A DNA stretch of 64,000 nucleotides from Phallusia mammillata (GCA_965637545.1 OZ281497.1:18538001-18602000), one strand, 5' to 3'. Shown: positions 1-24,566, counted from the first letter of the stretch. Numbers and translations: made by a program. The notes: a model not told the origin generated them from the sequence alone.

Positions 1-71
1 CCACTTACTCCCAAGTTCGAATGCGTAGTCACAACAAAACTTTTATTAGTATTTGTTTTGCTTTTTCACAG

Positions 72-1191: not shown

Positions 1192-3173
1192 ACTAGTGTC
1201 GATTTACTGCCGTAACGCTGTCGTTCGTTTCGAATAAACCTTTGTATTGTTGTCGGCGCATATCAATTTGAGTGTCGTTTGCAAGACTTTTACGACCATC
1301 AAAGTGTCACCATGTTGGCGCTCGCGGCAAGGTTGAACGTTTCTTTGTGTCACTTACGACCGGACGCCTCGTGCCATTCTGGTCAGGGCGAGCTCCTGTC
1401 GACCCATGTCAATGCACGCGTCAGTCACACGCTCGTTATGCTGCCTTGAATCTCCCCTCGCTGCCCCTGTCATTCGATGAGCGTAAAATTGAGATGTCAC
1501 CTGGTGTGTGTCTGCCCGAAGGGTCGAGCTGGGGCTTAAGCGGTGGTAGTGCCATTAGAGGCTGCGACGAATTCCGCGTCTTGTTTAGAAGCGAAACAGT
1601 GCATTGCGCAGCGCTGCTTTCGACCACCGAGCCGAGTTTGGGCGACACTCGGCAGAAATCAGCGGATGAGTAACAAAGCGTGGCCTTGTTGTTTCAAGGC
1701 AGGGGTAATTAAAAAAGCAGGCCAACTATGGCGGCTTAAAACTCAGTTCAGGTGTAAGTGCAGTGAACTTTAGTTCCCGCTACATAGAGTTTAGAATGTC
1801 TTCGGCATTTGAGTCTGTATGAAAGCTACCCGCAGTAACCAAACATGTTTTGAAGGAGCTACATTATATGCTCCGAAACCGTTTGTAACTCTATTATCGA
1901 CTTAGGGCTGCATGCATTCAATTTGGCCAGCCATGCGTACATAATGCGCTTAGCGACCCCGCCAGAAATCGGCGTTTCCCCTTGATTCGATACGAGCCGC
2001 CGGTCAATTCTATGCTTAGGTAATGTTAACTGCATTATAGATGCAATTACCGTCTTTATGCCCGCAAAGAGATATTTTCAAGACAGAATGGGACCACCCG
2101 CAGTGTCCAAACCAGCCCAAAAAATACAGACCCACTATACCGACATGAAATCTTGAGCCATCCACGGATGAAGCGCTTTTCCTCCCGTGGACATTTAAAT
2201 GAAGAATAACGCGCCCCACGGAGCCACTCAAGAAGGATTATCTCCAGTTTCCCACGCCAAGCTCCCATTTCCTTGTTTCAACATCTCACTTTTCCTTTGT
2301 TGTCTTTGATCTCTGTGCAGCAGTCGGCGTCTGAAACGTCCCGGGCCTGTTTAGCGACGTGTCTCCCGTTCACTAAAAGACAACTAAATCAGTCATCTTG
2401 CAAGTTTGCGACATAAAGCGTGCCGAGTTGTGTATATTCGCCTGAAATTAGATCCCCGCTATTTTGGGTCTCGCAACAGGCTGTGACTCGCACCTAAAGT
2501 TCGCGACACGCGACGAAACTTAAACTGTGAAGTTTGAACCGGGTTCCCAGCGATCGGAATGGTTTAAATTTGCATACAAATTACGTCTTCGCGTCCTTTT
2601 GATCTCTGCGTCTTTGATTCGGCGACTACTGGTAATTTGCGTTTCGCATTAGGCACGTTTATCGCGAATATGACGCAAGTAGCAGATTTTAAATCACAAG
2701 CTGAATCGGTGCAAAAATTCGCGTTTGCGAACAGTGGACGGTAGCGGTTTTTGCGCGCGCATTGTTTTTAAATGTGATTCACAAAAGAAACAAAAACATG
2801 ACGCATCTATGCTAAGCTGGCATTTGTCGTGGCGGTCGCCAAATCGCCGATTATATGTCGTGTAGAGCGGTCTTTTTTTGAGAGGTCGGCGACGTAATCG
2901 GATTGCGGAACGTAATCTTTCGCCCTTGTTTGTGACTCTGCATCAACAATCTCTATTCTGCGATGCTGCTCCTACTCGAAACGCCGGTGCGCAATGGTGG
3001 GCTGCACAGGAAAAAGGCCGTTAATCAGCGGGAAAAAATCAGCGTCTTGGAAAAAAACTACTTTGGGGAAATTTTTCAATACCCGTTTTTGCATTGGATA
3101 GACTAAAGCTAGGAATTGTGCCTGAGCAAAGCTTAAACGAATTCTCGAACAAGCAGCGGAATGACGCAGCATT

Positions 3174-3190
3174 GGTTCAGCGGGAGGTCA
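3174..3190 (+). promoter_or_regulatory. Perfect DR5 retinoic acid response element GGTTCA-gcggg-AGGTCA
   Basis: Exact RGKTCA-n5-RGKTCA ending 39 bp upstream of the TATA box of the CYP26 distal promoter. Confidence 0.85.
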
Positions 3191-3228
3191 ATTTGAAAAA
3201 ATGGAGGCTAGCATCTTTCGTCTCGCCT

Positions 3229-3263
3229 TATAAAGGCTGAGCTTAGGCGGTGGGAGCTCATTC
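3229..3263 (+). promoter_or_regulatory. CYP26 distal core promoter: TATAAAG (3229) and Inr TCATTC (+1 about 3260)
   Basis: TATA-to-Inr spacing of 31 nt. Followed by donor aag|GTATTC at 3364, defining a non-coding exon of about 3260-3363. Confidence 0.7.
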
Positions 3264-3837
3264 TGAGTGCTGCATTCTCGCCGGACATTCATCCTGACAA
3301 AGTCAAGAGAAGGAAGTTTTTGATCCATATTGTTGATTTTTCTGATATTCAAATCTTCTAAAGGTATTCCTACACTTTTTTAGGAAAGTCCGTTTTTTAA
3401 ATTATGTTTGTTCATTGCCAACTTACACCCATGTATTTTTCGTTAGTTCAAAAACATTTTTATGGGTTTTAAGTTATTTTAGAAATAATAAGTGTGATAG
3501 ATTTCTACTAAAAAAAAATCGGAAACTACCTCAACATTTTTGTGATAAGACATCATAGCGATATTACTAATATTAAAGAAAAATATTGCCAAATACATTT
3601 GTAAATAACAAAATTTTGTTTATATTTATTTTATCATGCAATTTTGTTAGCAACAACTTACCGAATGCTAATAATGCTTACAAAATCTATTGCTGCTTTG
3701 CAAAGATAATAATTTGAAAGGCTTGTTTATTTCTTTGTCCTACTATTGTTGCGTCATACGGATCATTTTCTTTATAGAACACTGGTTTTGCAATAAATCT
3801 TACTTTGAATCAATTATTTCCAGGTGTAAAGGCTGGA

Positions 3838-6800
3838 ATGAACAAATCTATTGTGCCAACATTGGTCTGTCCTAACTCGAAAAACATGATGTGTTATGTG
3901 AGTACAGTGATTAAATATCATTCTTTAACTTTGCCCCATGCATGAAATATTGGAGGTTTCAAATCCCATTAACTTTTACGACATATAACGTTTGGAATCT
4001 TATTATATCCGAGTCCCAATTAAACTAATGATATCCTTAAAACAGGCAATTTCGTGAAGGTTTACTGTTTGATATTGCAAATTTTCAATGATCTATAATT
4101 GTACTTATTGATCAATTTTGCTGTATCAATTTCGTGTAATAATTTTGATACCTTGATGTGTGTTTCCATTATCAATAAAGACTTTACTAAGGCATATAAA
4201 ATGAGGCTTTTAATCCGTTTTATTCTCCCAAAGCGATTTTGGTGAGGTGTTGTAAATTTTTGTGGCATTAAACCTTGTGCCTGGTTAGCTTTTCTGCAAA
4301 TAGTTAAACAAATGAGTGATTGCACAACTATGAGAAATAATTACACTTCAGTCCAGATTATTGCCTACGTAAAACGCAATTATATTTTGTCAAATTTGGG
4401 CATTGACGCGTCGAAGGCCTGTCGGTCGGTACTAAAATTTGAACAACAAACGACTCTTTCTTAACAAATTAAAAAGCAAACCATAACGCAGCTTTTAGGA
4501 AAAACAGACTCTCGGCTTTATCTTGAATCCGCTTTACTTTTTGGCGACAAGTAAATCATTTCAGCAAATAGAGATTATCCAGCGCATACACATCAATGTG
4601 GTTTTGTCAGACAGCTTCAATCTATACTAAAAGCAGTAACTGAGTCAGGATTTTTTATTTGCATTAGACAAATAAACGTATTCTGACCCAGTGATCTATC
4701 TCTTCAAGTTGCCATAAATTCTCTAAAAGTCATTTCGAAATAAAAATATCTCTCGATATTTTTAGTCGACGTAAAACCCGTTAGGTTTGTTTGGACCAAC
4801 CTATATTGATTAGGTCAAACGTTGCTTATAATGTTAAAACTGCGTAAGTTGGAAGGTCAAGTATTCTTACATCGGGCCAGCCTTTACAACTTAAACACCG
4901 CTTATTATAATAATCCATGCGTTCATGTTGGTGCAACCGAAAAGGCCTAAAATAAACTGGTAATACTAAGCGATTATCCTGATACAATCGTGGTGGTCAG
5001 AGCAATTCTCAGAAGTAGAAGTTTATGCAAACGCTGGAAATTCTTCACTTAATGCGGTAAAACAATGCAAGGACATCTATCATCGGAGCATTACCGACGA
5101 CTTTGTGGACAAGAACAGTGCGTGGCCGTTTGGCAAACAAACGCGGAAGCATTGAAAGCAGTTCTCTGTAGTACGTATCGGGTGAGGCGCGGCGACAGTA
5201 ACTTCCCAGTGCTGGCGGCAGCGATTAGTCACTTGCATGCCTTCTGTCTTGTGGAAGAAAGACAAGCGAAGTGTAGTTGTCAACGGGGCGACGAGGCCAC
5301 CCGCGCGCATGACAGCTCGATTGCCGCTTGCTGCTTCGCGGCGACGTGCGCTATTTAAGACCCCAGGCGCGCGCTGGGTTGTCGAGTTAACCCACCACGA
5401 CTTGTCTGGGAACCACCGGCCCTGCCAGACATGACACCCACTAAATGCAATAAAATCCGCCGAATTTGCACTGCTGCACTCCCGGGGACGGCATAATGAG
5501 TGTCCGATTCGTGTCACTCAATCGTGACTGCCCTGACCCTGTTCAGATCGGTGCCCAAGTTAGCGCATATAAACTGACATCCGCGGTCAAACGCCGAAAG
5601 CTGTCCAGGGTCTCTAAATTCCTTTCGAATAATCTCACCCCAGTGACTCTGGCGGTGATCATTTAGGATAATAACTCAAATACCAATGTCATTCCAAGCA
5701 TGGCCCTAATCGCACTTGACCGCAGGCGCGTTTTATCAATCGCTTGCTTTAGCTGGCACTTGTCTTGCCGCGTTACACCCTATCGGGGTATTCAATGGCA
5801 CTTCGTAGGTGTCAGTCAAAACCACACCCTTTGTTTTACTCGCTTGTCAAGGATGCTGCTTGGGCCATTTTCAACAACAGCAATAGGCTTTTCCACTAGA
5901 CTGGTGGAATGACGAAACTAGAGTGTAGATAGCTGTTGACCTTTGTGCCGCAAAATTGATGCATCGTGCTGAGAAGGCGCATTTATACGATTCAGAGCTA
6001 TAGCGTCACCATCGTATTTTGTGACATCCTATAGGAAAATATATTTTTAAAAAATGTTTTGGTTGGGAGAAACTGAGTTGGTTAAAAAATTACGCGATAG
6101 GCGTTTTGTACTATCTGCAAACAGCTGACAATTAAAAAAATGCGTTTGTGAGTGAATTTCTCAGTCGAGGTTTTCTCCGAGTTTTTATTTAGGTAATTAT
6201 TTCAAGCACATAGTGCAATTTTAAGAAAGAATATTTTCTCTTATGGTGTCGTGACCTCAAAAACGTGAATACGAAAACATGTGTATTTGGAAATGTGTTT
6301 ATAGTGGTTTTAAGTGCTTTCCTTTGTGAAACGCCTGGTTACGGCATAAATGGAAGCAATGGTTTACACCTGTAGTTTCATAGTGTGCGATTCTGCTAAA
6401 AAGTCTGTAAATATACATAATGTTTTATTAAGTTAACAGTGTATGCCCAGCAAAACTCCCGAGTATCTGTCATTGTTAGCCGGTCGGTCACGTGCGAGAA
6501 GTCGCTTTGCGTCACGGTGGTCCAGCACCCTTCTGAGTGAACTTTTGATGACCCCCTGTTACCGCTGAAGCTTGGTGCCCGGGTCGACGACATTCTGTGC
6601 ATGTCCGTCAATGCTGTTTCCGACTTGCATGGATGCAAACGGCATTTCTTAGCGGCAAGTCTGAACTTCGCGTGATCGTGATTGACGAGCTCCCTTGCCA
6701 GACGATCCTTTGTTGTTTTTTTGGGATGTGCTGATCCTAATCATCGTTCTCTCGCGATGCTCTGTCTTTTGCTGCTCGCCGGTTGCTTTTATCTTGGCCT

Positions 6801-9800
6801 CAAGTAGTAGCGTGGCTTCAAGTACCCACAATGTGATCAACACGCAACGGTGTTCTGCTGCAAACATCTGCTTTTCAGCAGTGAAAATACGTTGGTTTGG
6901 CTGTGAAACACCCCTTGTAAAAATCCGTTGTAAGGGAGCACAAAATAGGGAGGTAGGCGATCAAGCATTCAAGCAACAAGAAAATTCGGCGATGTCATTA
7001 CTTGTTTACACAAAAATAAAAACAAAAGATTAACTATTTTGCATATAAATCCGCCTGTTTGGATAACGCCCCTGACTCAGTCGTGACTTTTTATGCAATA
7101 AATAGCGTGCAGTGCGTATTATTTTGCCCCGGAAGTAACAACATCCAATAACATATTGCATGAGAATTTTTTTATCACATCTAGAGACTCTATCATTCGC
7201 AAATTAAACAATATTTCCGCTCATTTGCGCTGACTAAGCGTGTAAGATTGACGTCAACTCGTGATCGGGATTTTGTTGGTATGTTTTACGTTTCCGTCAC
7301 ATCACGATGCTTTATATAGATTGCGATGCAAATAATGTGGTCATATCGTTTTTGTAATCAAATGGAAGAATACCATTTTTCGCAATTTTACATGTTCTCT
7401 GGACAACGGGCTTATTTGGTAAATTCGTCACAGCCTTGTAATTCCATATCCCCCTTGATCAGAAACGTTTGAAGGAGATTTCAATCTTAATTCTTAAAAT
7501 ACGCTACATCAGTTCATTTCCGCGATTGTGTAGCAAATTGCTCTTCGAATCGAGTCCGATGATCTACTCTTCGAAGTGACCCCGGAACCATTCGAATTAT
7601 AATCAGCTCTTTGATTCGGCGCACTGCTCGCAGCAGAGCAATTCATGATTGGCCTTTTGCCTTCCACGCGTTTTCGGGCCAAAGTTTAGCGCCCGGCACC
7701 GAGGCAATACACTTGCGGCGCGACTTTCAATGCGCTGTGATAACACCGGCACTGATTTGTTGTAAGTGTGTATCAGTGTGACTTCATTTACTAGTTAATG
7801 GTAAACCCCAAAGCGACGTTGTTCAGGAAAACGAAAAGCGTTTTTCCAGTGGCAGTTTTTTTGTTAATTGCATGCGGTTGAAACGTCGGTGCGGTACAGT
7901 TTGAAGTTGAGCCCTAAAAAGTTAGATGCAGTTGGTTTAAGAATACACAGTTCACTGCAGAAGTCTCGTAGAGACCTCCAGGAACCGCGTTGAAGGTCGT
8001 TCAGTTTCTGATTATTCAAAGCGTCGGAATGCGACCGGGGGAACCGAGTCCCCAGACCGAAAACAACAACAGTTGAGACTTCGCACGCTATATTAGCTGT
8101 GTCGAGTGTCGTCGGTGTGCGCAACAGGCCTTCTTCCGGTAAGAACGTTTGACCCACTGTTGTTCTGGAGAGGGAAGAGGCAAAGGGTCGGGGAGCTCGC
8201 CCTCGTAAAGGCCTACACGACAAAGCAGCCTTTTAAGCTCTGCATGACCGTAACCGAACGGGGTTCAGACCGCGCTTGCTGTCCTCCAGGTGAACTTTCT
8301 GTAATGTTGACTATTTGAGTGTGTCTTTTCTTGACAGCGCCCGTGCGACTTTGCACGCAAGGGAGCGTGAGCCTAATTCGTATTCGACCGGGGTCGTGTC
8401 CTCTAAGGTGCTTTTTGCTGTGGCGTCGTGCTTGTTTGGGGGAGCCGAGGTCGTCCTCCAGCACCGTGCAAATGTAAATGCGAGCATCTCGAACGTTTGC
8501 CCTGTCAAAGAACCGAATTAGTGCCGCAAACTGTATAACTTCGGTTTTCTGGTAAACTCAACGCACTATGCATAGTGCTGAATCATGTTTGATTCGCGTG
8601 TTAGTAGGTTTGTGTATCGTGAACTTGTTGTGCGCATGATGTGGCTGCACATAAATGCAGATGATATTGTATGACGCAACCCAAGTGGCATGCAGTTTAT
8701 TTTTAGACTCGTGCTCTGACGGTCTTATTAAACCGTAATTGAAGAAATGTCGAGCTAATTGAGTCCAGTCAGCGTGCGACCAATGTCTATTGTGGTCTTA
8801 AGCAGCAAACCTCTACATTGTTTGGGTACTTAGCAACGGGGGGTCATTATAAGCCCAAGGTTTTGTTCGCGACTCGGCCGTACCAAAACACGCCTTTGCC
8901 TGATGTCGTGCAATCGTCAGGAGGCAAAAGTTCGCCCATGCACATCTAGGCGTGAAATTGCCCGACCGTCAATTATATCCCTCCGTATTATGACGAGCAG
9001 CAAATCTCTTTCCGCCCGCACTGTCTCAGGATGTCTTTCACATGACTAATGGGTTTCTACCGCGCTTTGTCCGCCCGGCTCTGTTGACGTCAGACTGTGT
9101 TGGGTTGCATCGCGGGTCTTTGTTGGCCAATTCTCGCCCCGCCGCGATTAGGTTACCCAAGCCTGATCGACTTTCGCGAATTCGTCCCAAATGTATAGAA
9201 CTGTGTCGCAGGTAACATGCAACAATGCGGACCACCAGAGGCCTGCGCGGACCGCCCGAGCTCTCGGCCAGGCACCCTTCCGCGTTCGAAGCTTTGTTGG
9301 GCGCGCTCGTGCCTGCTGTCTGATCAATCCTGATTCCGCGTCGCGGCAATACAAGCAAAGTCCCTTCCGATGGGCCACGATCTGATAGAATCGACTGCGC
9401 GCTGAAGTGACGAGTGAAAACATTGCCGGCTCATGTTTTCTTTATTGTGATCGTAACTGACGTTTCACGCGTTTCTGGGTTGATACGGATTGCTGCAAAC
9501 CAAGACAAACGAGGGTGGTCCGACAGCATTCTCTAACCTGCTTATTTCGAACTGGATTAACTACAAAGAAAACGTGTCCCATAATCCGATACATTCCGTT
9601 GGCGCTAAACCTCAACGCCTGGTAATCTTTGTGGATTATATAACTCTCTTGGGTCGAAATAGACCTTTTTTGGTCGTGCTACCTTATTTAAATCGATTAT
9701 TCTATTTGATGCGGCATCTAGTTTGTATCCAATAATCTGCGTTTCAGGAAGTGGTTAAGTGTTGTTGCTATATCTACAATAAACGAATTTTCATTCCGAG

Positions 9801-12800
9801 GAAAATTAATATTGCTATCTGTCATTGTTAGTCGGAAAGAAAACCAAAATTGTGAAGGTTATAAGGCCTATTAACAATTTCACCCGACCTTTGTGAAAGT
9901 GGACCCAATGAGATTGTTCAATCGCTCACGAACTCGTATAAAAACAACCCTCGTATCGACCAGGGCAGGCGCCATTTTGTAGAACGCCCGAACTCCCTGT
10001 ATCTCAACAGCCGCGCAGGTGACTGTAAGGCGATGGTGAACCAATGGGTATTTCACCTTCTACTTGGTTCGTTTACTCACGTTTTTGTGTCTTTTTTGCT
10101 TAACCGACTTCCCATAATACAGGCTCACGTTTCTCCATGCCCCTATCGCGTTATTCCTTCCGATTTCGGCGTGGCTTACTTGCCCTTTTCCTGCAGTCGT
10201 GTTTACGGTTAACAGTCGTGCGCCGACCGCAACAGCACGACGTGTTGCAGTGGTTTTGAGTGGAAACTGGAAAGCACAATGGAGTTTTTTAAGCTTGAGG
10301 TCAGTGAACGGTTTCGTATTGCAATAGATTTATACGAGTGGCCGGAGGTGCTGGTGGACGTAACATGAAAAACTGTTATTCCTCGGTAATCAGCTTATGG
10401 CACTGCGGATTACGGTGACGTGAAATGAAAATATACAAACCTTTCATTAACGTCCGCTAATGGGCGCATTGCATTGATTAGAGATTCATAAGCTGCCTTC
10501 ACCGAAACAACGCAGAATTCGCGTTTCAAAATCGCTTTTGGCAGCTGACACTTAGAAGCAGTAGAGTAAAGCTCGCGCGTAATTTGTCTTTGTTTGTGTC
10601 TTGTGTAAAAGTTCTGCGTAAACTCCCAGCAACAGTGGCGACCGCAAAGCTAATGACACTTGGCGATTTGGGCAGTCATCGTTTGTCGTTGTAAGATACA
10701 CGCGATGATCAAGGTTTGTCATTTTCAAGTGCCGTGGAATCGCGATACACACCCGCGTCGCAAACGGAATTACCCTGTTAAGTTGAGCAGGAGATCGAGC
10801 GTCCTTAAACCGCCGATTAAAGTCAGGCGACCCGCTTGTCCGGCAAACCCAATCTAGTTGGCGGATATATTCATTTTAAACGCGACTTAAAATAACCCGG
10901 GAAGTCTTATTAGCCACGTTTCACGGCGATTACGAGTTCTACGATCTGCGATTAATTGCCTTTCCCTCGATATTGCTTTGTCACGGTTTCCTTTCTGTGA
11001 CCTAAGGGTCGCGTGCTCCAATGAACGATAACAAAGTTGAAGAGGTCACTCAAATTATATTCGTGTACCGATATTGCAGCCTCGTCTGTAACCCTGTAGC
11101 CTTCAAGAGAGGTGGTGCCCTGTCTGTTATTTACCACTTATAGTTTGGTTCGTGTCGATTGAGATGCCGTTGCACGTGTTTGCATTTGTCACCGCGTCGC
11201 ATGCATTGCAGCGCAGCAGCGTCACCTGGTGTTTGTAATCGAGGTACAAAAGTCTTTACGTTCTTAAAATCTTTAAGTTGCATGGAAATTCCAATCCCAT
11301 TGTGGCACCATTGCCAGGGCAACAGGAATCGCATACAAGGTTCAGTCACATGCATCAATTGCGTGTCTGGTTAGTTTCGCGTGCCGATCGAGAGGTCAGG
11401 CGATGGTCAAGCCTTAATTTTCGGGCGTTGTTCTCTCCAGTCGCCCATTTGGACGAAATCATTAGCGGCGAACTGTTCTGTACCGAGCCACGAATATCGA
11501 TTACCTGTTAATTTCGGACAAACTCAAATAAAGCTTTACGCGGAAGACGGTGGCGTAACCTAATGCTGAATGCTCGAGGCCATTCGAATGACCTTGTCCG
11601 GGCCGTTTGGAGGTCATAACAATTTCTCTATAGCTCGTTAAAGTCTACGCAAAGCGGCGCGGATTCTTGGAAGTTTTTTTCCGCTATGGTAAAACTTGTG
11701 GTTTTCTGTGTACGTGACCTAGCTTAACTGCAGACAAACATGGATGTTAATGAGTGCATTAGGCGGGTCGATAAAATGACGTGATGGCCAAGAGGTCATC
11801 AAGTCCTCGCCACGTTTTTGTGCGCTCACGTCTGTTTTCATTTGGATTCGAAGAATGTGCCATAAATAAACATATATATTAAGGCAGCGATAATTGCTGA
11901 ACTTTTCTAAACTAAACTTGGACATTTATGTAATTACGGCGAGAATCGTGAACCTATTTTGGTGCTGTGCCAAAGCGCATTGAAATACATTAATTTTTGA
12001 AATAATGGCGTACAAACCGTTTCATTCACACGATGAATAAATGTTTGATTTGCCATTACAGTTTCTAAAACAAGCGCAGGTTTTTTGCTTTGACTAGAAA
12101 GCTCTTTGCACCAGCAACAGACGCCTCGTCTCTTCGAGAATGCCTGACATTTAAGGGGATTTCCCGTAACAGATGGCATTGTGAATTGCCATGCGCTGTT
12201 GTTTGTGTAGAGTGGAATGACGCACATAGTGTGTAGAAATACATTCCTGTAACTTAGAGTAAACTTTTATTTGATCAGTCCCAAGCTTGTAGCTATTTTT
12301 GTCAGTGTTTCAAACTTTTATTTAAGCTGCTAGGCTAATTTAAGCGCTCTCCGCTACAACTAATAGTTTGCACTCGCGTTTTTTCTGTTCCACTTGTCAA
12401 CAAGTTCACAAGGTCAAACTATAACTGCGCTCGTATACGGGAATTTACGATATGACGTCGGTCGCCACAAGCCAATAATTGATCTTGGTATGTGCGCGTG
12501 ACTATAGCAGTGGTTCCAACCTTTTTTGACGCGACCCAAATACTTACCAAAATGTTTTTTAGTGGTTTCTCGCGATCCATGGACATGCTATTTTAGTTGA
12601 ATTTTTGTCTGTAAATTCGGAAAGCTTTTTAAAAATTATTACGCAAGTTTAGCAAATCAATAACCTTATAACGAACAAATAGTGTTGTTGTTTTCGACCA
12701 AACATTTCCATTTAACCAGGACTTGAGCTGAATCGAAGAATTATTAGCCAGACAACGCTTAACTGTGAGCTAACAAATCACTTTATGACGTCACAAACAG

Positions 12801-15800
12801 TTTTAACCATTATCACGACAAGTTGTGATGAAATTATTGTTGGGCAACAATTTAAAGCCTTGGGAAATATATAAAAATAACGCTACAAGGCGAAATCAAA
12901 AAGTAGATGTTCTTATTGTCACTAAAACAAGCGACCCAACAGAATGTTCAGGCGACCCAACTTTGGGTCGCGACCCATAGGTTGGGAAACACTGGACTAT
13001 AGTGTAATGGGCGTTACTTGGGGTTGGGGCGTATTTTTGCCTAAATTAACTTCAAAACAAAGGGTTTCAACGATGACACGTCTGACAGTATTGGTTTAAC
13101 ATACAAGGGTAACAAATACATAGCAGTTCATTATTTAAAAGCCTAAAAATCAATGTAAACATAAACAGAACGTTGTTAAAATGTGGAAATAAGTGTTGTT
13201 TTATAAGTTCTTGCGGCAAAACGATCTGGAATTATATGCAAATCTATCCCATCTGAAATTAGACCAAAAACACGTTTTCGTCCGAAAATTAAATTTGGGA
13301 TTTTGCTGCTGGTCACATTTTGTGGTCATTAACCGCAACAGTTGACGTCATTGTTTGGGCAAACCCGTCGTTATCTCATTACAAGTCTCAAAACGACGTT
13401 TCTGCGCTGTCAAATTTGCGTTTATGTTCACTTGCTTATCGCCAAATTTGAAAGCACGCGCGTTGGGGCTGTATATAATATATTAACTCTCAATATTCTA
13501 CGGATGAGGTTTTGTTGGTGACGGGTGATTTTCACACTGAACCGCCTTTTCCGCGGAATGGCGGTTTTTCCGTCGATTCCGAGAAATGGCTACATTGCTT
13601 CATTCAGGGATCACGGGTAACCCGATGCGCGTACGCAGGTTCACCTAAAGTGCAGATTGTTGAGGCACTGGTGCCCGAACTCGATTCAAGGACATAGCTC
13701 CCTTGCTTGTGCGCTCATTTCGCCCCCGGAAACTCAGGTGAAATGGTGATGCCACGCCTGAGGTCACACGCAGGTGAGGCGTATTTAACAATATCACCTT
13801 CGCATGAAAGATCTCGGCGGTGGCCGCAAGTTTTGTTTGACTAGCGCATACCTTCGCCGGATTAGGATTATCAAATCCTGGGCAAACATCGTTGCCCTTC
13901 CGACCCCCACCAAAACATTTAATGTCCTCGTGTTGCCCCACACAAGTCAGCGCATTATACGTTTTATTTACCCCCGTATCGTATTGGCTTGTGCTGTGCA
14001 CTTGTGCGATAAGGCGGTGCCCTTCTGGCGAACTTTGTTGCGAGAGTTGTATTCTAGCGGCGCCAATAGTGCACGTTGCTCAAACCTGAGCTATAGTTTA
14101 TTGTTGCCTTGCGCAACATCTGCAAGCAAATCACCGATCTTTGTACTGTTTGACGTTGTGTGAACTCCATAACCTCTGTCTTGTTTACTTTCGAGCCGGT
14201 GGCGGGAGTTTTTCGCCCGCCAGGGGACGCAGGTTCGTTTTCCGGCAGGTTTGACCAAAGAGGTTTTAATTGTCAAATAATAAGACAAAACCCGCGCAAG
14301 AATTTTAATCTGTCTACTGCCAAATCCGTCCAACAGCGAACCTTTATCACAAAGCCCAACATTCCTGTACAAGCGGGATTATTCCAGTTTCTTTGACCCC
14401 AGTGTTGTTGTTTATGCGGCTCACCTGCTCTGCGGAGTGCAAGGAGATTTGACCCGTGATGTAATTACGGGATGTGTTGCCGAAACCATGGTTGAAGTAT
14501 TCGCGGACGAAGAAAAATTACGGGCGTGTTTTGAATGCAGATTAGATCGTTGGAAACACAACATTGTGGGGTAAACGGGAGGTTCTCGTTCTGGGTTTTC
14601 GTGTTCATTATTTTAAAGCCCACACCAAACGTGACCGAGTTAAGGCGTGTCGACGAGCAGCGTGGTTTGTTTGAAAACAATTTTGGATCTTTAATCTACT
14701 TTCCTGTGAATTTGTGGTTCATGACCGATCGTGAACTTTGGGGTCATTGTAAGAATTACATAAAGGGTAAAAAGGGCAAAACTGTCAAAAATTCGAAGTA
14801 AAAAAATCTGAACCCCATTCGTGGAGTCATGACCCCTCCTCCTGGTTTGTCAGCAGCAGTCTCCTTTTGACCGACGAAAATATGTTTTCAGGTTTGCTGG
14901 CGATCAGTTGCAGGTGACCGCGCGTTAACCTCTCCGCTTTCTTCTCTAAAATCACCTTACACGTGCGCATCGTTTAATGATAAGGGCACTTATCTCTCTA
15001 TTGCTCTTATGCCTGAGCGTGCCGCAACAGCAGGTAACAAAACGCGGACTAACGGCGGGTTGTGGACATTTTATAACAATGAACGTTTTCAATGACGATT
15101 GATACGGGGTAATGGGGTCGCAGAGCGGTGAGCAGGTTGTGTTTTGCCGACATCCAGTCAACCAAATCGCCGCCAATTGGCTCCACACTTTCCGCAAGTG
15201 ACCGAAACGCTACGTCGGTACGGTTTTGCCGCAACCGACGAAGACGCAAAGCGGTTACAAACCCGGGGTGAAACTTTTACTATCAAGGGTCAGCGTAAGG
15301 GCGCCCTGGCCATGCACGGCGCCGAAACTTGCTCCAATGTAAGCTGCGTTGATGATGGATCCTCCTCCACGAAGATCGATCCAGATTAGAACCTGGCATT
15401 GCCCTGATGGCCCCGCCGTTCTGTTACTAAAAACTTACATGCCTACATAGACCAAGCGATGCTTCACCATCGATGGGAAGCAAAAGTTCACTTATGACGC
15501 AAGTGATGTGGCTATTAGTGACACAATGACCACACAAAAAACTATTTTTTTAATATTTTAGAGTGATTTCCCTTAACCTTAGATCAAAGGTTTCAATGTT
15601 GTTTATTTTCGTCTTTTGATTATTCGAAGGCTGTTTTATTTCATCCAGTGGTTATGTTTTGTTTGACAAATGACCGGAATTCATTGAACTAATTGCCGCG
15701 CCATGACCCCCCTGCGTTTATATTTACCTGATTTCATTTGCAACGGCACACGTGCGGTTTAGCAATTAAACCTCGACCTCGAGTTCTTGAAAGCCAACAT

Positions 15801-18800
15801 ACAAATTGCGAAATTGGCAAAAAGTGTTCGCGGGGCGAACTACAGCAAAAGATTGTCCTTAAGCCAAAAAAGTAATGTTTACGTTTGATTGTTCCGCTGG
15901 TGCTTTCCTTTTTTGGCAAGGGAAATTCTTTGCTCTTGATCCACTTGAATTTTGATTTTTGGATAATTAGCTTAACGGCTTTAAGATTTCGGGACAACTA
16001 TTTCTGTGCGTGGTTCGGTCATGTCTGTTGCGTCACATGGTGTTGTTTGATGATGTCCAGCAAGCGTTTGACCCTGTTTGGTCAACTGTCGCATGCAGCA
16101 TCGTCCGATACTATTTATGATGTGCCAACCTCTTAAAGCGTTGATGGCGCAGCTTGTTGTAGATGAATTTATAAACCAACAGATGTTCCATTGCAATAGG
16201 TCTCTTTTCCTTCACCTTTCTTGATCTATTTTTTCATTACCGAAAATAAACGCTGTTTGGATGTTGGTAAAGGGATTTTATTTGTGTCCTGGAAAATCCT
16301 TTCTATTCCCTTTCTATCCCCACTGATCCATGCCAAAGTTCGTCCAAAGGTGAACTAAAATTGGTGATAAAAGATAGCAAACAATAACGTTACAAATCGA
16401 GCGAAACAAAGGCCACTAACGAGCGGATTATTAGAGAAGGGAAAAAAGCGCGAGACACGTGCACCGACACTTGCCTAATACCAGCGTCAGACTTTATTTC
16501 TCTTTTTCTTGTCGCTATAAAAGAAGGTCGGCGAATCTGCAGTGTTATTAATTGCCTGCTAGCTGTTACTGACTTTCAAATCGACGAACCAGTTACAAAC
16601 TCAAATCAAGAGGTGTGAAATTCGCACAGTGAAAAGAATATTTTATCAGTGCGGTCAAAAAATTCTCTCGGTCTCACGTTCACAGCCGTAAAAGTTCCCA
16701 CACGAGAGAGGATTGCATCAAGGCGAGGTGACGACTCTAGCTTACAAAGAAAAGAGGAAGAAAAAGGAAGGTTCTTGGCTTGGCCGCTTAGCAGTGGTTA
16801 TATAAAGGCTGATCTGTGGCATTCACCGAAGTAATCTTAACTCACACCAATGTCGCTACCAGTGGACCTGGATATCCACGCTACTTCGCTGCGAGGGTAC
16901 ACATATTTCAGGGTACCGTCAAAGCTTTTGAACGTGATGAACGACAACGAGAAAGAAGAAACACCATCTGTGTGGTCTGGGCTTCCGCATGCCGGGGTAC
17001 GAACGCAGCAATTTTCTCAATGTCGCTTCTATCGCGTTTCCCACTGCCGCATGTTCGGCATGGATGTTAATCGTATTTGAACTCGGCGCGTGTGTGCGTT
17101 CTGGTTTTGCAAAGTGTAAGATTAGCGTCAGGACTTTGACTTCGGCCACTTGATTTTTGTTTGTGAACAAGCAGCGGATATAATTCGACATATCTTAAAG
17201 CTGCAAACCTGGCAACTTTTGTGCTAGAGCGCAGGCACATATGTTTTACCGTTGCAAGATATATGGCGAACTATTTTTTGAGGAAAGCATGATATTTTAT
17301 TTTTTTCTGTTAGTAATGATAGTTTATTAGAGTGCGCGCACCCAACATTTGCATCCGAGATTAGGGATGAACAATCTGAAAACGCGATAATTACTTACTA
17401 TCAAATACTAATATTGTGTGTCTTTTTGCAGGAACAAAACGAGACCGACAATTGGGAGAGAGTTATGGTTTCGATAAACGGAGTTGCTGACAGTTCGGTG
17501 ATAATTTCTGGTCGGGCTGGGGAAGCTGTGGGAAAGACAAGTTATCTACACGCTGTGATTTCTCCACACAACTCTACACCTCTGGATGCGTCTGCAAGAG
17601 GACCAGCCGATGTAGTTGAGGAAACAACCATGTCCAGTGAACCAGGTCTACCCTCTTTGTTGCTGACTGCGATGTGTTGGGCTGTGGTCTATTTCGCAAC
17701 TTTGGTCGTTTTCTGGAAACTTCTGTGCGTGCTGTGGCACAAATGGAACTTGCGCTGCACCAGCGATCCTGCATCAGGACTCTCCCATCTTCCCTTACCA
17801 CCAGGAGACTTTGGTCTTCCCTTCGTTGGAGAAACTCTCTTGTGGTTGGCGCAGGTGAGTCCTTGAGATTTTTTGTTTCCGCCTGTTTTATCGATACGCG
17901 AATGGGGCCAATGACGTGCGTAGTTGGAATCTTAAGGACCCTTAACATTGTCTTTTGGAGCTCAAAATTGGTGTTCTGCTTTGTACAAAAGCTGCTGTTT
18001 GCAGGTCGAGAGGCAACGACGCGCGCCCAAGTGTACACTATCACCTCGCGTGACGTCATTGCCCTCGAGCGGCTGTCAGTCTTGCGCCTCTTTAACCTGT
18101 AGTAACCTGTGTGTTGGTCCGGTGTGTTTTGTAATGTTTATGTGTGTTTTAAAAACGGTCGCCATTTTGTCGGTCAGGGGTCACATACCGAGCAATTTTA
18201 CTCGAGGCACGAAAATTTCGCGCGTGAGAGCGGCTACTTGTTAATTGGCGGGGCGATGAATAGCCACGCGGTCGTGGGCGATGGTTAACTCTCGGCCCCG
18301 TCAAGGCAAAATGCCTCAAGAATTTCCGCCAAAATGTTTTTCACGTCCTAAACATTGTTGCTTTGTCATTTGTGTTACAACGGATGATTGCTCTGACTTG
18401 CATACGAGTTAATTTTAATTAACGCACACAATTCTGAAATTCGATACATATGTAATTTATATAACCAGGAGAATGCGCCTGAAGTTTAAACGTGACTGTG
18501 ATTTAGTCCAGCCAACAGTAATTAGCGCTGAATCGTAACACGAAAAAAAACGACTCTTCAACCTGTGGCCGTTTTAAAACGCAACAACAAACAGTTTTAA
18601 CTCGTAATTATTTGTTCTTTGTTACAACCATCGTTTCATGCCTATGACCCAACGTGTCATTGACTCTTTGGTATATAAGCTAGCGGAATGAAAGAGCGCT
18701 CGTTTAACGGCATTTTGAACCGCTACCTTTGCCCGGCACCTGGTCGACCCCCGCCTGACCCCGTGGTTCTTATTGACACAGCGCGGAAATGGAATGAGAT

Positions 18801-21800
18801 TATTGTACATGATGTTTCCGTTTCATTGTGCACCGTCGCCGCGCGCCAATGCGGGTGAATGATATTTGCTGGGTCACTTAAAGTTCGAGGATGAGGGTTT
18901 CCAAGCGCATGCTAAGATATGTATATTCACACTTCCTTGACATACTGCACTATTCAACAAGCACAGTGGTTTAAATAATCGAACAGGCGTGGCTTCCGTT
19001 GTGGACACCACAAGAACGCAATCACAGATCGCTTATATTGTCAATCATTTAACGTTGCATGTTTGCCGTAACGATGGGAATAATTTTGCGGTATGCGTTA
19101 ATCGAACGCATTGTACATTGAAATATTTTAGGCCCCGGCTAGGCAATAAGAACCATGTGATTGTTGAACCGCAAAACGTTGCGGCGCAGTATTTCACATT
19201 GAAACGTGGGAACAATTAACAAAAGAGGTTTCCGTAAAGCGACAAATGGTACTATTCACACGATCCAGCATTAAATTATCAATCTAAAAGCATGAACTTT
19301 CCAACATACTTTGAGTCGCGAATCAGTCATCTCTTGTTGACCCGGCCGCATGTTCTTTCAAGTGTTTGTTGTTGTTTTTCTTTTTCTGACCAGCAGTGTT
19401 TGTGATTATACCTGCCTGACCTCACGTGCACGGGTCAACTCTGTGCGACCCCGAGCCGGCGACGCGCGGTCATTTTTTGCGCCTTTACGATCCCATTCAA
19501 CAACATTACGATCGCTGATTGGATTAGACCGCCTTTGTCTTATCTCGATCCTTGCGGCTGGATCGCTATGTGTCACCATTCGGTCGTACAATGGAGCTTC
19601 GAGCTTCAATAATGCAGCGGGTTCGAACGTCGGCCGGTTGTTATAGGCTGGCGGGCGACTGCACTTAACGAGCTCTTTAACTGCTCGCCTGTCCGGGTCG
19701 GCAAAGGCAAAGCCAAGGATCCCCCTTGATGTAGCACCCGTGTCCCTTGCGGTGACCCTCGTTAAACTTACACGCTGTATTGTTGCGGACGATCACTCGT
19801 CAGTTCAACACATTTTGCAGAAGGTCGTTGTCACAATTCGCTTAACTTTGTGATGGTATAAAGTAAACTAGCACCATCCTGTGACTTACCGATCACAATA
19901 TATGGCCAAATAATGGTGTCTACATATTAGCGGAATAATAACAAACGTAACACGATGCTGTTGTTTGTTTGCGTAGGGTGGCAAGTTCAACTCAATAAGA
20001 CGTCAGAAATACGGCAACGTGTTCAAGACCAACGTCATCGGCGTTCCTATGGTTCGCGTCACCGGGCATGAGCTTGTAAAACAGGTAAATGTTCGTCGGT
20101 AAACATCACTCTACTTTTTCTACTGAAGTTGTTCACCAATACTATTAATTTGATCGTAACATGTAACCAATATTAATGTTAATTTCAGATTCTCAGCAGC
20201 GAACATGACAAGGTGACGACGATTTGGCCAACTGCGGTCCGAAACATTATCGGTGAAAATGCACTTTCCAACTCCACTGGAGCAGATCATTCCCACAAAC
20301 GCAAACTAACTCAAAAAGTGTTTACCCGTTCCGCGCTAAACAGCTACATCCCAATGGTCAGAGAAAAATGCGTCCAATTGGTAAGTCTATGAACATTCTG
20401 AAAAAATGAATAGATGTAGTAAATGTGGCCACGATCGTGTATAAAGTCGCATCTACTTCTCTGCTTACAACTTCGAAATACCCTATTCGGCATTGTGAAG
20501 CGAATCGCGCTTGAGGCTCGTTGAAATAACCACTGTAGCTCTTTAAAGCGCCGGAAACGTTCATTGAATGTGGAAAAAACCTTTCGTCTTGTCGCTACCG
20601 CAAGTTTTAACTCCTGTAAGTAGCGATACAGGCCTCAATCGTCATTCCATAAGTGGATGTCTTTCAAACTACACCAACGCTTTGTTTCTCCACATTTCGT
20701 TTGAGAGGCTACGATTGAACTTTAATTGTAATTGGGTGAATGGTTTGGCCGATGCATGAGCTGCCTGAGGTAATGCCGAGAAGCTCTTTTTTCACAGAAA
20801 AGCTCTAGCGTTTCTGTGAAATTCGGGATAATCTTAAGTTTGGCGGTAGGTGTGATAAGTTGCGGGAACAGCGACACCTTTACGTGCTTATAATTTTCAA
20901 TGCGGTATCGTAAAGTAGACATGGGTTATGCTCGCTCGTGGGTGCATTCGAGTGCTTTTCGCGAGAACGCGGTTCTCTCACATGGTTAGCTTTCAAATTT
21001 GCACGATTTGTTGTTTACGACCAAACCCGACGCATCCAGCACTAATGATAATAATAGTTCGATTTGGTATGGTTTTCCCGAGCAATTCTATGTGCACGAA
21101 ATTACATTACAAAGAAATGTCTTCTACTGCGTCATCAGTTTTATTTCGCCAAAACGTTTCTTCGTTAAACTCCAGTAACCTGCACGCGCATTAGCCCCAG
21201 TTCTATTTATAGGCCAATTTGGTAACAGTAAATTTATTTGCCTATAACGTCGATGCATGTTTCGAGTTGTATACAACGCCTCGGGAAAGTTCCTTTAAAA
21301 GGCTTTAAAACAAGTTTTGATTATCTGATCAATTTTAAGCTGTTTCCATGGAAGTAATTGATGCAACTAGATCAGTTTCTATAACGTCCAATTTTCATTT
21401 ACAAGTATCGAAACTATTTGGGTATTTTTTGCAGCTTAAGGAATTGGGACAAGTCGACGAGCCGACAATTTTTTCCAGCATGCAGCGCCTTACCGTTTCA
21501 ACCATGTGCACCTTAAGCGGTGTTAACGTTAAATCCAGCGAAGAGTTTGATGAGTTGTACACCACGTTTAGAGACCTTGCCGACAACGTAATGTGCATTC
21601 CGCTCAATATCCCGTTCTTCGCCTACAACAAGGTAAGCCGGGTCCAAAGTGCTGTTTACATGTTTCCTCGAAAAGACTAGCCAAGTTCAGCAGATTATCT
21701 ACTGTTTATACGGTGGCTCAATGCACCACAACAAGCGCAAATCCGTTCTCCACGAACTGGCTACAAAGGCTTTTGGTCATATTTGAGCGGAAAAACGCAA

Positions 21801-24566
21801 TCATGAATTAAATTTGTTAATCCGGGCATATTATTGTTATTTTCAGGCCTTCAACAGCGCGACGTTGGCGTGCACGTTTGCTTATGATGTTTGCATTATT
21901 ATTAATATTTTCTTTGTTTTAACAGGCCTTGCAAGCAAGAAAAAAGATGCTAAAACTGCTGCACACCCACGTTCAAGAAAAAAGACAGTCTCTTATGAAA
22001 ATGTCCCAGACGGGCAACGGCCCTTCGACGGACGAGCTTGACGCCTTTAGTATCATGCAGTTGGAAAATTTAAAGTATCAAGAAAGGTATAAAATCCTAA
22101 AGTTTGCGTTGACTAAGTTTCCTATTTGAGTGTAATGTATTGTTAATGCAGTTGAATCGATTATCAAGTCAAATTGTAAACAAAAACAGAATTCATTATA
22201 CAACATAAATACAATTTTTTGAAGAGACTTTCGTTTTTACCTAAAATGTAATTTTTTTGACAGATGTCAAGCCAGAGCCAACATTAACAACAACAATGTT
22301 GATGTAAAAGAATCATTACCGAAGAACGGCGAAAACGACGCACCAAACACCCCTATGAGCGACATCGCAATGAAGGAAACCATCCTGGAACTGTTTTTTG
22401 CTGGTTATTCTACCACTGCTAGCGTGATTACATCCACTATGTTGGAGCTATCCCGTCACCCCGAGATATTCAGAAACCTTGAAGACGAACTTCTGAGGTT
22501 CGGTCACATGCGAGAAAGCAGCTCCAAAGATGAGGAGCCATTTGAGGAACTGGATCTTGCTAAGTTGCACGAGATGCCATATTTGGATCAGGTTGTCAAG
22601 GAAACATTAAGGTGTCATCCAGCCATTCTTGGTGCTTTCAGGCGCGCAAGAAAAACCTTTCAGCTCGGGGTAGGTTATTGTTAATTTGTAACGACGGTTT
22701 TTGTCATTTAAGTTTTGGGTAATTTAGGATTTATAAATATTATCCTCAAGCCACAATGAAATAGTTTTAAAAAAAAACAACCGTTAACACAAAACAATGA
22801 TTTTTCCCAAACGGTTATTTCTCCCCACTTCGTTGTTGCATGCGCAATAAGCTCTCTCGCATTTTGGCACAAGTTCATGTAGTTTGAGCGCCCGTGGCGG
22901 GATCAGATACCTACTAAGTTTCCGCGAACAAAGCGTGATGCTATGCAACACCGGTGTGGCAAAATTATCCGCTTTAAAATGCAAATCGGAGACAGGTAGC
23001 GCTAACACGTCGCATTATTAACTGCTTTGTGGTCGGCATGTGGCACGTCGTTCTACGCAAATTCGCTGTCGCTGGCAGCGTCCACGTCTTTTCGTGACCA
23101 GCTTAATAACTTTACCGGGCGTGTTAGCCTTATGCAGAACTTCAGTAGCCGGCCCCGTTCGAACTTGATACCTCGGCCAACTGTCGCATGTAAAAAAAAG
23201 TAACCCCGACTTGACACTTGTTTTGTGGCGTCAAGGCGTTCGCTTTTGCAGGGGTCAAGCACCCAAGAGCTATGTGGGTGCGTTGTTGACACTGATCCCA
23301 TTGCCGCGAATAGTACGACACCCTATTGAGAAGCCGCAACGATAACACTGGCCTTGTGTTAAACAGAAGTTTTGGCAATGTCGACCACCGCCTCACCTTT
23401 TCACCTCTTCCCATTGCTTGTCGAAAGGTCTTGTAACCGCACTAGCTTACATGGTAAAGCTATACAGAAGCGCCGTTCTTAAGAGATTGCGCAGTTCGCA
23501 TTGGTAATGAACTAATAACTCTCCCGGCAAGCATACTGATAAATATCTTGACATGGTAATATATGGCTCTTGAAGCGATCGCCGGTGCTCAATGAACAAT
23601 GATAGAGACCGACGCGAGGCTGTAATTACAAATTGCGTTTCGTTGAAAGTAGTGGAGGCGCGTTCCGGGCCGAATGCCTAAGGTTGTGTTTGTGCCAAAT
23701 AAGTCAGTGGAAGCAAACGCTGTACAGCGATTCAAACCGCAGTCCACGCGCAAGCGTGCGCTCAGCTTCTTCAAAAATCTCTGCGGGCAAGACACCGAGC
23801 CACCGAAGCATCTCAAACAAAATACCCTGCATAGCTTTGAAGTTAAACGCCACTTGCGTATATCGTCCAAAATAATTGCATGCCCATGTTTCCTGCTGTG
23901 TCAGCCAACCTAACCGGGTCCCTTTACTGTTGCAGGATTACCGCGTACCCAAAGGCTGGACGATGGTCTACAATATCCGGGACACCCACGATTACGAAAG
24001 CGGTGGCCTGAACGAGTTTAACCCCGATCGATTTGCAAAGAAAACGGACAACAGGGAAAATAAGTTCAAGTGAGTTCCCTTTCGCTTGTAAAAATAACAA
24101 GGAAGGGAAATTTCCCAATCGGTATTTCATAAACCCGATTGCCCCCTTCGTGCTTACGTCATTAACACAAACACTGGGGTGATTTTTTTCTTAACGGACC
24201 TTGGGTTTCAGGTACTCGACAAACACAACTTTTTTGTTGAGTTTGTTTTCCAAGACCCGTAGATAATTTGTTTTCTAATGCATTAAAATTAAGATATACA
24301 ATCAACAAGATCCTTTGTTGCAATATACTTCAACTCATATTTTTCTTTTCAGATATATTCCGTTTGGGTGCGGACCGCGCAATTGTCCGGGCCAGGAGTT
24401 TGCTCGCATGGTGATCAAGCTCGTGGTGGTCGAAATGATCCGCCGTTTCAAGGGTTGGGAACTCACAGGCCAAAATCCTCCAGTCATGCGGGCGATCCCG
24501 ACCTTGAGGCCGGCCGACGGAATGCCAGTGAAACTCTTTCCCAGAAAACGAGCCGGTTTCGTGTAA
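3838..24566 (+). CDS. CYP26: Cytochrome P450 family 26 (retinoic acid hydroxylase-like). Coding exons: 3838-3897 (putative), 17432-17854, 19977-20084, 20189-20380, 21435-21632, 21926-22086, 22264-22669, 23936-24069, 24353-24566
   Basis: All junctions are GT-AG and in frame. TM anchor followed by LPLPPGDFGLPFVGETL; KYGNVFKT; I-helix ELFFAGYSTTAS (CYP26B-like); K-helix KETLR; VPKGW; FNPDRF; heme motif FGCGPRNCPG. The first coding exon is less certain, with alternative ATGs at 17465 and 17630. Confidence 0.9.
6538..6554 (-). promoter_or_regulatory. Perfect DR5 RARE (GGGTCA-tcaaa-AGTTCA on the minus strand)
   Basis: Plus strand reads TGAACT-tttga-TGACCC, an exact consensus match. Confidence 0.75.
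8280..8296 (-). promoter_or_regulatory. DR5 RARE-like element (AGTTCA-cctgg-AGGACA)
   Basis: Plus strand reads TGTCCT-ccagg-TGAACT; one mismatch to consensus. Confidence 0.55.
11393..11409 (+). promoter_or_regulatory. DR5 RARE-like element AGGTCA-ggcga-TGGTCA
   Basis: One mismatch to consensus; nearby DR2 AGTTGA-ag-AGGTCA at 11035-11048. Confidence 0.5.
12403..12416 (+). promoter_or_regulatory. Perfect DR2 RARE AGTTCA-ca-AGGTCA
   Basis: Exact RGKTCA-n2-RGKTCA. Confidence 0.7.
12508..12994. mobile_element. hAT-superfamily MITE
   Basis: TIRs cagtggttccaacc / ggttgggaaacactg; perfect 8-bp TSD gactatag (12500-12507 and 12995-13002); gggtcgcgaccc subterminal motif. Confidence 0.9.
13638..13777 (+). 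promoter_or_regulatory. Pair of DR5 RARE-like elements: GGTTCA-cctaa-AGTGCA (13638-13654) and AGGTCA-cacgc-AGGTGA (13761-13777)
   Basis: Each has one mismatch to consensus; about 120 bp apart in CpG-rich intronic DNA. Confidence 0.55.
16337..16812 (+). promoter_or_regulatory. Probable proximal (alternative) CYP26 promoter: DR5-like AGTTCG-tccaa-AGGTGA (16337-16353), TATAAAA (16516) and TATAAAGGCTGA (16801)
   Basis: Same RARE-then-TATA order as the distal promoter, 0.6-1.1 kb upstream of the 17432 acceptor. The 12-mer at 16801 is identical to 3229-3240. Confidence 0.5.
18745..18887. promoter_or_regulatory. Intronic DR5 pair: CGACCC-ccgcc-TGACCC (18745-18761, minus strand) and GGGTCA-cttaa-AGTTCG (18871-18887, plus strand)
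   Basis: Each has one mismatch (TCG for TCA); both lie in the intron after exon 17432-17854. Confidence 0.55.

Follow-up and report, generated by a model that had tools for sequence, protein, structure and literature searches.

A DR5-rich 5′ domain at the CYP26 gene of the ascidian Phallusia mammillata as a probable retinoic acid feedback switch

Direct control of CYP26 by retinoic acid (RA) through DR5 elements, direct repeats of a receptor half-site with a spacer of five nucleotides, is documented in vertebrates and amphioxus, and the CYP26 genes of both amphioxus and mouse are controlled via multiple retinoic acid response elements (RAREs; PMC5247814, PMC13738024). The three-gene CYP26 cluster of amphioxus carries 16 conserved direct repeat (DR) elements; in vitro, RAR/RXR bound 12 of the 13 DR5s as well as the single DR2 (Carvalho et al. 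2017, PMC5247814). Tunicates are not named among the genomes screened for RAREs in that study (PMC5247814). In the ascidian Ciona, RA strongly raises the expression of cyp26, which is lost with diethylaminobenzaldehyde (DEAB; PMC3458022). In the literature that we searched, tunicates appear with RA inducibility only, and we found no description of RAREs at an ascidian CYP26 gene. Here, we analyze a stretch of 64,000 nucleotides from Phallusia mammillata (GCA_965637545.1, OZ281497.1:18538001-18602000; hereafter the window, in whose coordinates positions are given), which contains a CYP26 gene with a cluster of DR5 elements in its 5′ region, and which could fill the tunicate gap.

We interpret this region as the 5′ regulatory domain of the ascidian CYP26 gene, and RA feedback driven by RAR/RXR is the most likely role of its DR5 cluster, at a probability of roughly 0.75. 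A feedback switch appears very probable because DR5s occur at about ten times the chance level and because the same excess is found in three other sea squirts without shared DNA sequence. Both strands were scanned with the half-site RGKTCA, a DR5 being RGKTCA-N5-RGKTCA, and the empirical background consisted of 200 kb of DNA from the same genome (twenty random 10-kb pieces) together with whole-genome pattern counts. With at most one mismatch, the interval 3174-18887 holds 0, 2, 3, 2, 3, 8, 0, 1, 1, 2, and 2 repeats at spacings DR0 to DR10, and the eight DR5s compare with a mean of 0.76 in dinucleotide shuffles, none of which (0 of 1000) reached eight at any spacing. The whole genome (240.3 Mb) contains 1062 perfect DR5s and 19,145 with at most one mismatch, a rate from which 1.25 of the latter are expected in 15.7 kb (Poisson P of at least eight, 5e-5). 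Two of the DR5s in the interval are perfect, compared with 0.032 from shuffles and 0.069 from the genome rate (Poisson P of at least two, 2.3e-3); the initial annotation had estimated about 0.03 perfect DR5s in 16 kb, a figure that holds for equal base frequencies but is lower than the 0.069 given by the genome-wide rate. On an annotation-defined control interval, 1189-19966, which runs from the stop codon of the upstream gene KANSL3 to the end of the first coding intron of CYP26, there are 8 DR5s against 1.5 expected (P = 1.7e-4). When two mismatches are allowed, 29 DR5s are found in 3174-18887 against 10.6 in shuffles, and thus the weaker sites are enriched as a class while remaining individually uncertain, about half of the two-mismatch sites being expected by chance. 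The twenty random pieces contain 10 DR5s with at most one mismatch (maximum two per piece) and 8-20 repeats at each of the other spacings, so the genome as such has no DR5 preference. The scan of the window between 24.6 and 64 kb (about 40 kb) found no DR5 at this stringency, and inverted and everted arrangements of the half-site in the region are low, level with the non-DR5 spacings. The enrichment of DR5 over other spacings and over both backgrounds bears out the dense array that the initial annotation had described.

The same scan, at up to one mismatch, was applied to the orthologous CYP26 loci of three other ascidians. It returned 12 DR5s in Ciona (L002, interval 1-25277; shuffle mean 1.09, mean of the other spacings 3.2, two perfect), 16 in Clavelina (L003, interval 1-30260; 1.44, 3.1, and three perfect) and 9 in Styela (L001, 10 kb upstream; 0.47, 1.7, and two perfect). 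The remainder of each of these loci, the neighbouring paralogue included, holds exactly one DR5, which is the chance level, and neither the second Styela paralogue (L004) nor the divergent paralogue downstream in Phallusia (gene B) has a clear DR5 excess. In blastn and tblastx comparisons of the Phallusia 5′ domain with Ciona, Clavelina, and Styela, only the KANSL3 and CYP26 exons match, and the non-coding DNA is unaligned. Duplication of the sites as repeat copies was ruled out by a repeat search and by alignment of the three pairs of sites that lie about 124 bp apart, which revealed no homology between sites; there are no tandem repeats in 1-26 kb. The DR5 excess has therefore been maintained through sequence turnover, and what is conserved at the CYP26 orthologues is a DR5-specific excess, in number and class only. 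Gene order is also shared, as KANSL3 lies upstream and a second P450 gene downstream of the Ciona and Clavelina orthologues, whose NCBI models start 12 and 16 kb, respectively, before the first coding exon. Five of the Ciona sites are located in the last introns of KANSL3. A perfect Ciona DR5, AGTTCAggcagAGGTCA (within L002:9648-9720), lies about 350 bp before the annotated gene start (10001). Twenty-eight base pairs past it is a TATA-like gctatatata, and an initiator-like ttgtCAtttt is present about 290 bp before the annotated start; this may be an unannotated start that mirrors the arrangement around the Phallusia site at 3174.

The internal structure of the sites was studied by pooling and orienting the 45 sites with at most one mismatch from the four ascidians. 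Mismatches are unevenly distributed, the 5′ half having 8 and the 3′ half 28 (p = 1e-3; 6:4 in the background). At positions 1 and 3, the 5′ half favours G and T (GGTTCA-like) and the 3′ half A and G (AGGTCA-like; Fisher 2e-6 and 6e-3), while a purine occupies spacer position 4 in 34 and position 5 in 37 of the 45 sites. This polarity is not an artefact, because the symmetric search pattern cannot create it, and it is the one expected of what would be a heterodimer element. The sites also resemble the amphioxus consensus RGKTSA-NNNRV-RGKWCA, validated by electrophoretic mobility shift assay (EMSA; PMC5247814), to which 3 sites in Phallusia, 4 in Ciona, 5 in Clavelina, and 0 in Styela match exactly. 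With no exact match in Styela, this consensus is too strict to be adopted as a universal ascidian rule. A position weight matrix (PWM) trained only on the 37 sites from Ciona, Clavelina, and Styela gave 13 hits of at least 13 bits in Phallusia 1189-19966, where 0.28 are expected from the background of its own genome. When the same half-site scores were combined with spacers of varied length, DR5 had 23 hits and the other lengths 1-10, the background being flat.

Some points weigh against the feedback reading. The limits 3174-18887 were set by the initial annotation on the sites themselves, which is why the test was repeated on 1189-19966. The region is richer in GC and CpG than the genome, its half-sites are enriched about twofold, and other spacings are mildly raised, so that part of the raw DR5 excess is compositional. 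A GC/CpG-rich stretch with many half-sites (3.66 per kb, compared with about 1.6-1.9 per kb elsewhere) might even yield functionless DR5 matches by chance alone, an explanation also favoured by spacings other than DR5 being mildly above shuffles and by DR5s having been sought because the gene is CYP26. Such a chance origin is strongly disfavoured and, in our view, very improbable, given that no shuffle reached the observed count at any spacing, that the Poisson probability at the genome rate is as low as given above, that DR5 outnumbers the other spacings 3- to 5-fold in each of four species, independently, and that chance would not be expected to produce the half-site polarity and spacer bias. 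Site-by-site positional orthology between the species cannot be shown. The distal 5′ exons of the CYP26 transcript, described below, were seen in only one of four RNA runs, and the contig from this run (X1) includes the DR5 at 3174. The Ci-cyp26 gene assayed with RA may be either the gene at L002 or its neighbour. Finally, other RXR partners can bind DR5, so that sequence alone does not name the receptor.

The genome contains about 18 nuclear-receptor loci, as counted by the class of DNA-binding domain. In exon-level comparisons, a DNA-binding-domain exon at C8:7.755 Mb has its best match in RAR alpha, beta, and gamma (E 2e-19; next family 1e-14), and another at C8:17.455 Mb in RXR (E 2e-25); the genome thus encodes both RAR- and RXR-type DNA-binding domains. 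RXR-NR4A heterodimers use DR5, and the cluster could be functional while being read mainly by another receptor pair, such as RXR with an NR4A-type or orphan partner, or by COUP-TF-type repressors, in which case CYP26 expression would be tissue-specific or dependent on an RXR ligand. The 18 or so receptor genes with the same class of DNA-binding domain leave room for such partners, and the spacer, purine-rich where it adjoins the 3′ half-site (AAAGGTCA-like), also resembles the extended monomer sites of NR4A-type receptors. We regard this alternative as unlikely, because the gene context is CYP26, whose RA induction in Ciona is published (PMC3458022), because the set of sites resembles the DR5s validated for amphioxus RAR/RXR (PMC5247814), and because an RAR-type receptor is present in the genome. 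Under the RAR/RXR feedback reading, the approximately 16 kb of gene-free, CpG-rich DNA between the KANSL3-like gene and the P450 coding exons would act as a regulatory domain. Transcription enters it at two places, distally at 3.07 kb or earlier and proximally at the TATA promoter near 16.8 kb. RAR/RXR heterodimers would occupy the DR5s, and binding of RA would switch the DR5-bound heterodimers from co-repressor to co-activator recruitment. Transcription of CYP26, presumably RA-inducible in Phallusia as well, would climb with RA, and the enzyme would then degrade it. Particular sites may act on particular promoters, and the number of sites may serve to integrate dose.

All 15 positions listed in the initial annotation carry the motifs that it assigned to them (Table 1). 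The perfect DR5s at 3174 and 6538 and the perfect DR2 at 12403 are present, the six DR5s described as having one mismatch (8280, 11393, 13638, 13761, 18745, and 18871) have exactly one each, and the six described as weaker (6662, 10017, 14915, 15115, 15287, and 16337) have two each. Among the weaker ones, 6662, 15115, 15287, and 16337 were recovered by the PWM from the other species, whereas 10017 and 14915 are indistinguishable from chance. The PWM scan adds sites at 13923, 14018, 10987, 11600, and 19435. The domain together with the first coding intron holds roughly 13-17 DR5-type sites (two perfect, six with one mismatch, and the rest weaker). They were described as spanning the CYP26 gene, and they do occupy its 5′ exon/intron domain and first coding intron, within the transcription unit, but do not extend across the coding body. 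A single perfect DR2 is only marginally above chance, and DR2 shows no enrichment in Ciona, Clavelina, or Styela. The DR5-type pairs 6538/6662, 13638/13761, and 18745/18871 are spaced 124, 123, and 126 bp apart, and in Clavelina a single pair is 118 bp apart; such distances may be either coincidental or preferred. Three copies of the 9-mer GGAATGACG are present in the 5′ domain (3158, 5906, and 12214, with a variant at 18685), where about 0.15 are expected, and one of them precedes the DR5 at 3174 by 16 bp. TGACGCA is over-represented as well (9 vs 1.7). An over-represented word of this kind may be the site of a partner factor; in the k-mer enrichment, CpG-rich words and half-sites dominate, with no clear partner motif.

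Table 1. Genes, transcript parts, and DR elements in the window (score, PWM trained on the other three species)
Feature	Position	Strand	Score (bits)	Evidence or remark
KANSL3-like upstream neighbour, last two coding exons	69-411, 760-1188 (intron 412-759; stop 1188)	+		Spliced contigs, tblastx
Distal 5′ exon 1 of CYP26 transcript	3069-3363	+		388-nt contig, RNA run X1; donor GTATTC after 3363
Perfect DR5 GGTTCAgcgggAGGTCA	3174-3190	+	21.2	PWM
Distal 5′ exon 2	3824-3897	+		Acceptor ATTTCCAG, donor GTGAGT; contig joint
Intron of distal-promoter transcript (13.5 kb), also upstream flank of proximal promoter	3898-17431	+		Spliced contig
Perfect DR5 GGGTCAtcaaaAGTTCA	6538-6554	-	19.0	PWM
Two-mismatch DR5	6662		10.8	124 bp from the 6538 site
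DR5 AGTTCAcctggAGGACA	8280-8296	-	17.2	Fits EMSA-validated amphioxus consensus
DR5 AGGTCAggcgaTGGTCA	11393-11409	+	15.8	
Perfect DR2 AGTTCAcaAGGTCA	12403-12416	+		Motif scan
Densest module, four DR5-type sites in 400 bp	13638 (+), 13761 (+), 13923 (-), 14018 (-); span 13638-14034		14.0-16.3	
Weaker DR5-type sites	15115, 15287, 16337; span 15115-16353	+	10.9, 14.1, 14.3	At most 1.7 kb upstream of proximal promoter
Proximal promoter and first coding exon, long isoform	16798-16996	+		TATA tatataaagg 16798, ATG 16850 (MSLPV...), donor GTACGA after 16996
CYP26 coding body	17432-24563 (stop)	+		Exon searches, tblastn
One-mismatch DR5 pair, 126 bp apart, first coding intron	18745 (-), 18871 (+); span 18745-18887		19.0, 16.0	
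Further site, first coding intron	19435	-	13.3	
Divergent CYP26-like paralogue (gene B)	29203-32253	+		Without DR5 excess; internal negative control

The identification of the gene as CYP26, as proposed in the initial annotation, is well founded. Exons were searched singly and full-length comparisons made via a database protein, exons being joined only for a frame check of the 5′ leader. The P450 exons of the window are 92-100% identical (tblastn) to UniProt A0A6F9D9M7, a Phallusia mammillata protein named “Cytochrome P450 26B1”, two of them match Pfam PF00067 (p450; E 6e-20 and 5e-12), and FGCGPRNCPG can be read as the haem motif. In a similarity ranking, which is not a tree, the next relatives of A0A6F9D9M7 are the CYP26B1-like proteins of Ciona, Clavelina, and Styela, followed by vertebrate CYP26C1 (E 1e-84), well before plant CYP families; a protein-atlas search with one exon returned only “P450”. 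We thus assign the gene to CYP26, with retinoic acid hydroxylase as its predicted activity. In the CYP26 proteins of Phallusia, Ciona, and Clavelina, the membrane anchor is preceded by an extension of some 105-130 residues, unusual in a microsomal P450, which begins with a conserved MSL and includes an LW motif as well as an N-x-T site (QNETD/ENATE); neither Styela CYP26 paralogue has this extension.

The transcript structure places the DR5 cluster within the gene. Since exons at 3.07-3.9 kb are connected in an RNA contig with the one at 17432, the region lies inside the CYP26 transcription unit, and the exon structure of the contig therefore places most of the DR5 sites in a 13.5-kb 5′ intron, with a second promoter, of the TATA type, downstream of them at about 16.8 kb; most DR elements in general sit within this intron. 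The intron is without called genes or repeats and has a CpG observed/expected ratio of 1.18 (0.85 in the genome background). The distal exon 1 includes, besides the perfect DR5, a TATA-like ttataaagg at about 3230. The contig from run X1 covers 3069 to 3361/3 and is then spliced, with the joint read as 3361>3822 (cut +2). Because this contig starts upstream of both the DR5 and the TATA-like element, that DR5 is transcribed in at least some RNAs and is not upstream of every start; the true distal start is at or before 3069, as contigs cannot reveal transcript starts. No contig covers the distal exons in runs X5, X9, and X17, an absence that proves nothing. The distal-promoter transcript skips the MSLPV exon (contig splice from 3897 to 17432), and a loose 18-letter contig end past 3897, AACAAAACGAGACCGACA, has its sole match in the window at 17433-17450. 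The proximal exon 16850-16996, which corresponds to residues 1-49 of A0A6F9D9M7, is joined by splicing to 17432 (acceptor TTTTGCAG|G). The common exon that follows (17432-17855) encodes the membrane anchor and a PPGxxGxPxxGE motif, the first coding intron extends over 17856-19966, and later exons begin at 19968, 20189, 21435, about 21.9-22.7 kb, 23930, and 24348. In a frame check, an in-frame ATG was found at 3838, making an alternative 20-residue N-terminus possible from distal exon 2. Two alternative 5′ ends are therefore seen, both spliced to 17432, the distal with 20 residues (ATG 3838) and the proximal with 49 (ATG 16850), and for this reason promoter choice would alter the N-terminus of the enzyme. 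In Ciona and Clavelina, too, CYP26 isoforms come in a long form of about 645-663 aa and a short one of about 540 aa. The gene model is thereby corrected to one with two promoters, a 13.5-kb 5′ intron, and alternative N-termini.

Further observations concern transcription and base composition at the locus. Runs X1-X4, from one 2020 study, contain 60-70% of the sampled words of 16800-24600, introns included, compared with 20-33% in other RNA-like runs, and splicing within 1-6000 is clean in run X1, which suggests very high or nascent CYP26 transcription in these samples. The whole CYP26 domain (1-24563) is CpG-rich, with an observed/expected ratio of 1.18-1.28 and a GC content of 0.44-0.48 (0.85 and 0.37 in the 200-kb background), and so is the Ciona CYP26 locus; CpG richness is consistent with an unmethylated regulatory domain. 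At the 5′ end of the window, tblastx finds a match to the last exons of Clavelina KANSL3 (Pfam KANSL3_1st). The GT..AG joint 411>760 of this KANSL3-like gene is supported by spliced contigs in three of four RNA runs, the fourth containing both exons on separate contigs, and its stop at 1188 is the 5′ limit of the gene-free domain. Beyond gene B, a 54-bp tandem repeat forms two arrays, at 38182-39665 (27.5 copies) and 43652-44246 (11 copies), with 89-92% matches, and these arrays explain why GC and AT skew are strong at 38-40 kb. The unit equals 18 codons, Thr/Ser/Pro-rich if translated in that frame, and the arrays belong to duplicated blocks, separated by about 4.6-5.5 kb, that carry identical DR5-like 17-mers at 40797 and 45420.

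What the number of sites means is a separate question from whether they are RAREs. The ascidian CYP26 gene may have an unusually large, turnover-tolerant RARE cluster, in which the number and quality of the sites set the threshold and gain of RA feedback, as an analogue dose integrator; we put this forward tentatively. Also tentative is the corollary that, with about 10-17 sites of graded match over 14-22 kb and two promoters, this would be the densest RARE array described on one gene. The initial annotation had suggested a graded-affinity dose sensor, which can at most be inferred, as any motif scan gives a continuum of scores. It is quite possible, although short of probable, that the sites are real RAREs whose number has no quantitative role, being distributed over separate tissue- or stage-specific enhancers with redundant “shadow” sites, so that each promoter would use only one or two of the RAREs, as at mouse Cyp26a1. 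The sites do fall into separate groups (3.2, 6.5, 8.3, 11.4, 13.6-14.0, 15.1-16.3, and 18.7-19.4 kb), there are two promoters, and the mouse gene combines promoter RAREs with a two-RARE distal enhancer (PMC13738024); however, 8-16 sites are kept in all four species, suggesting that the number itself is maintained. Separate enhancers would be a refinement of the RAR/RXR feedback reading, contradicting its dose-sensor part only, and in silico they are inseparable from a dose sensor. Because ascidian embryos take reporters by electroporation, the locus offers a tractable system in which to distinguish dose tuning from redundancy among many imperfect sites.

How does this locus compare with the described systems? 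In amphioxus, as here, the introns of CYP26 genes and the intergenic DNA around them contain many DR5s, and the amphioxus genes are RA-inducible; the consensus is near-identical, even in that position 4 of the 3′ half tolerates A and that spacer positions 4 and 5 are R and V, respectively. The initial annotation had considered the Phallusia array much larger than the few RAREs usual for a CYP26 gene, which overlooks the 16 conserved DR elements of amphioxus (PMC5247814). The amphioxus sites, however, are common to three tandem genes (about four per gene), and their positions are conserved in three congeneric species, whereas in ascidians 8-16 sites belong to one gene of a pair and are concentrated in its 5′ domain, and between ascidians of different orders, only number and class are kept, not positions.

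Vertebrate Cyp26a1 has, like the Phallusia gene, a DR5 near a TATA-type start; its distant RAREs cooperate for full RA induction in a negative-feedback logic, which the Phallusia gene would share (PMC5247814, PMC13738024). Cyp26a1 differs in having a handful of sites, and its conserved AGTTCA-N5-AGTTCA element is not intact in Phallusia, where the DR5 at 3174 lies inside the distal exon of the single contig seen and most sites are in the 13.5-kb intron between the promoters. Within ascidians, a parallel is the intron-2 enhancer of Ciona Hox1, also an intronic element, whose reporter responds to RA and DEAB (PMC3458022), which shows cis-regulation through RAR to be at work in ascidian embryos; this enhancer, however, is one compact element at a Hox gene, unlike the multi-kilobase homotypic cluster at a gene for an RA-degrading enzyme. 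If our reading of the Phallusia locus is correct, a feedback architecture with multiple RAREs would be common to all three chordate subphyla, despite the complete turnover of non-coding DNA in ascidians.

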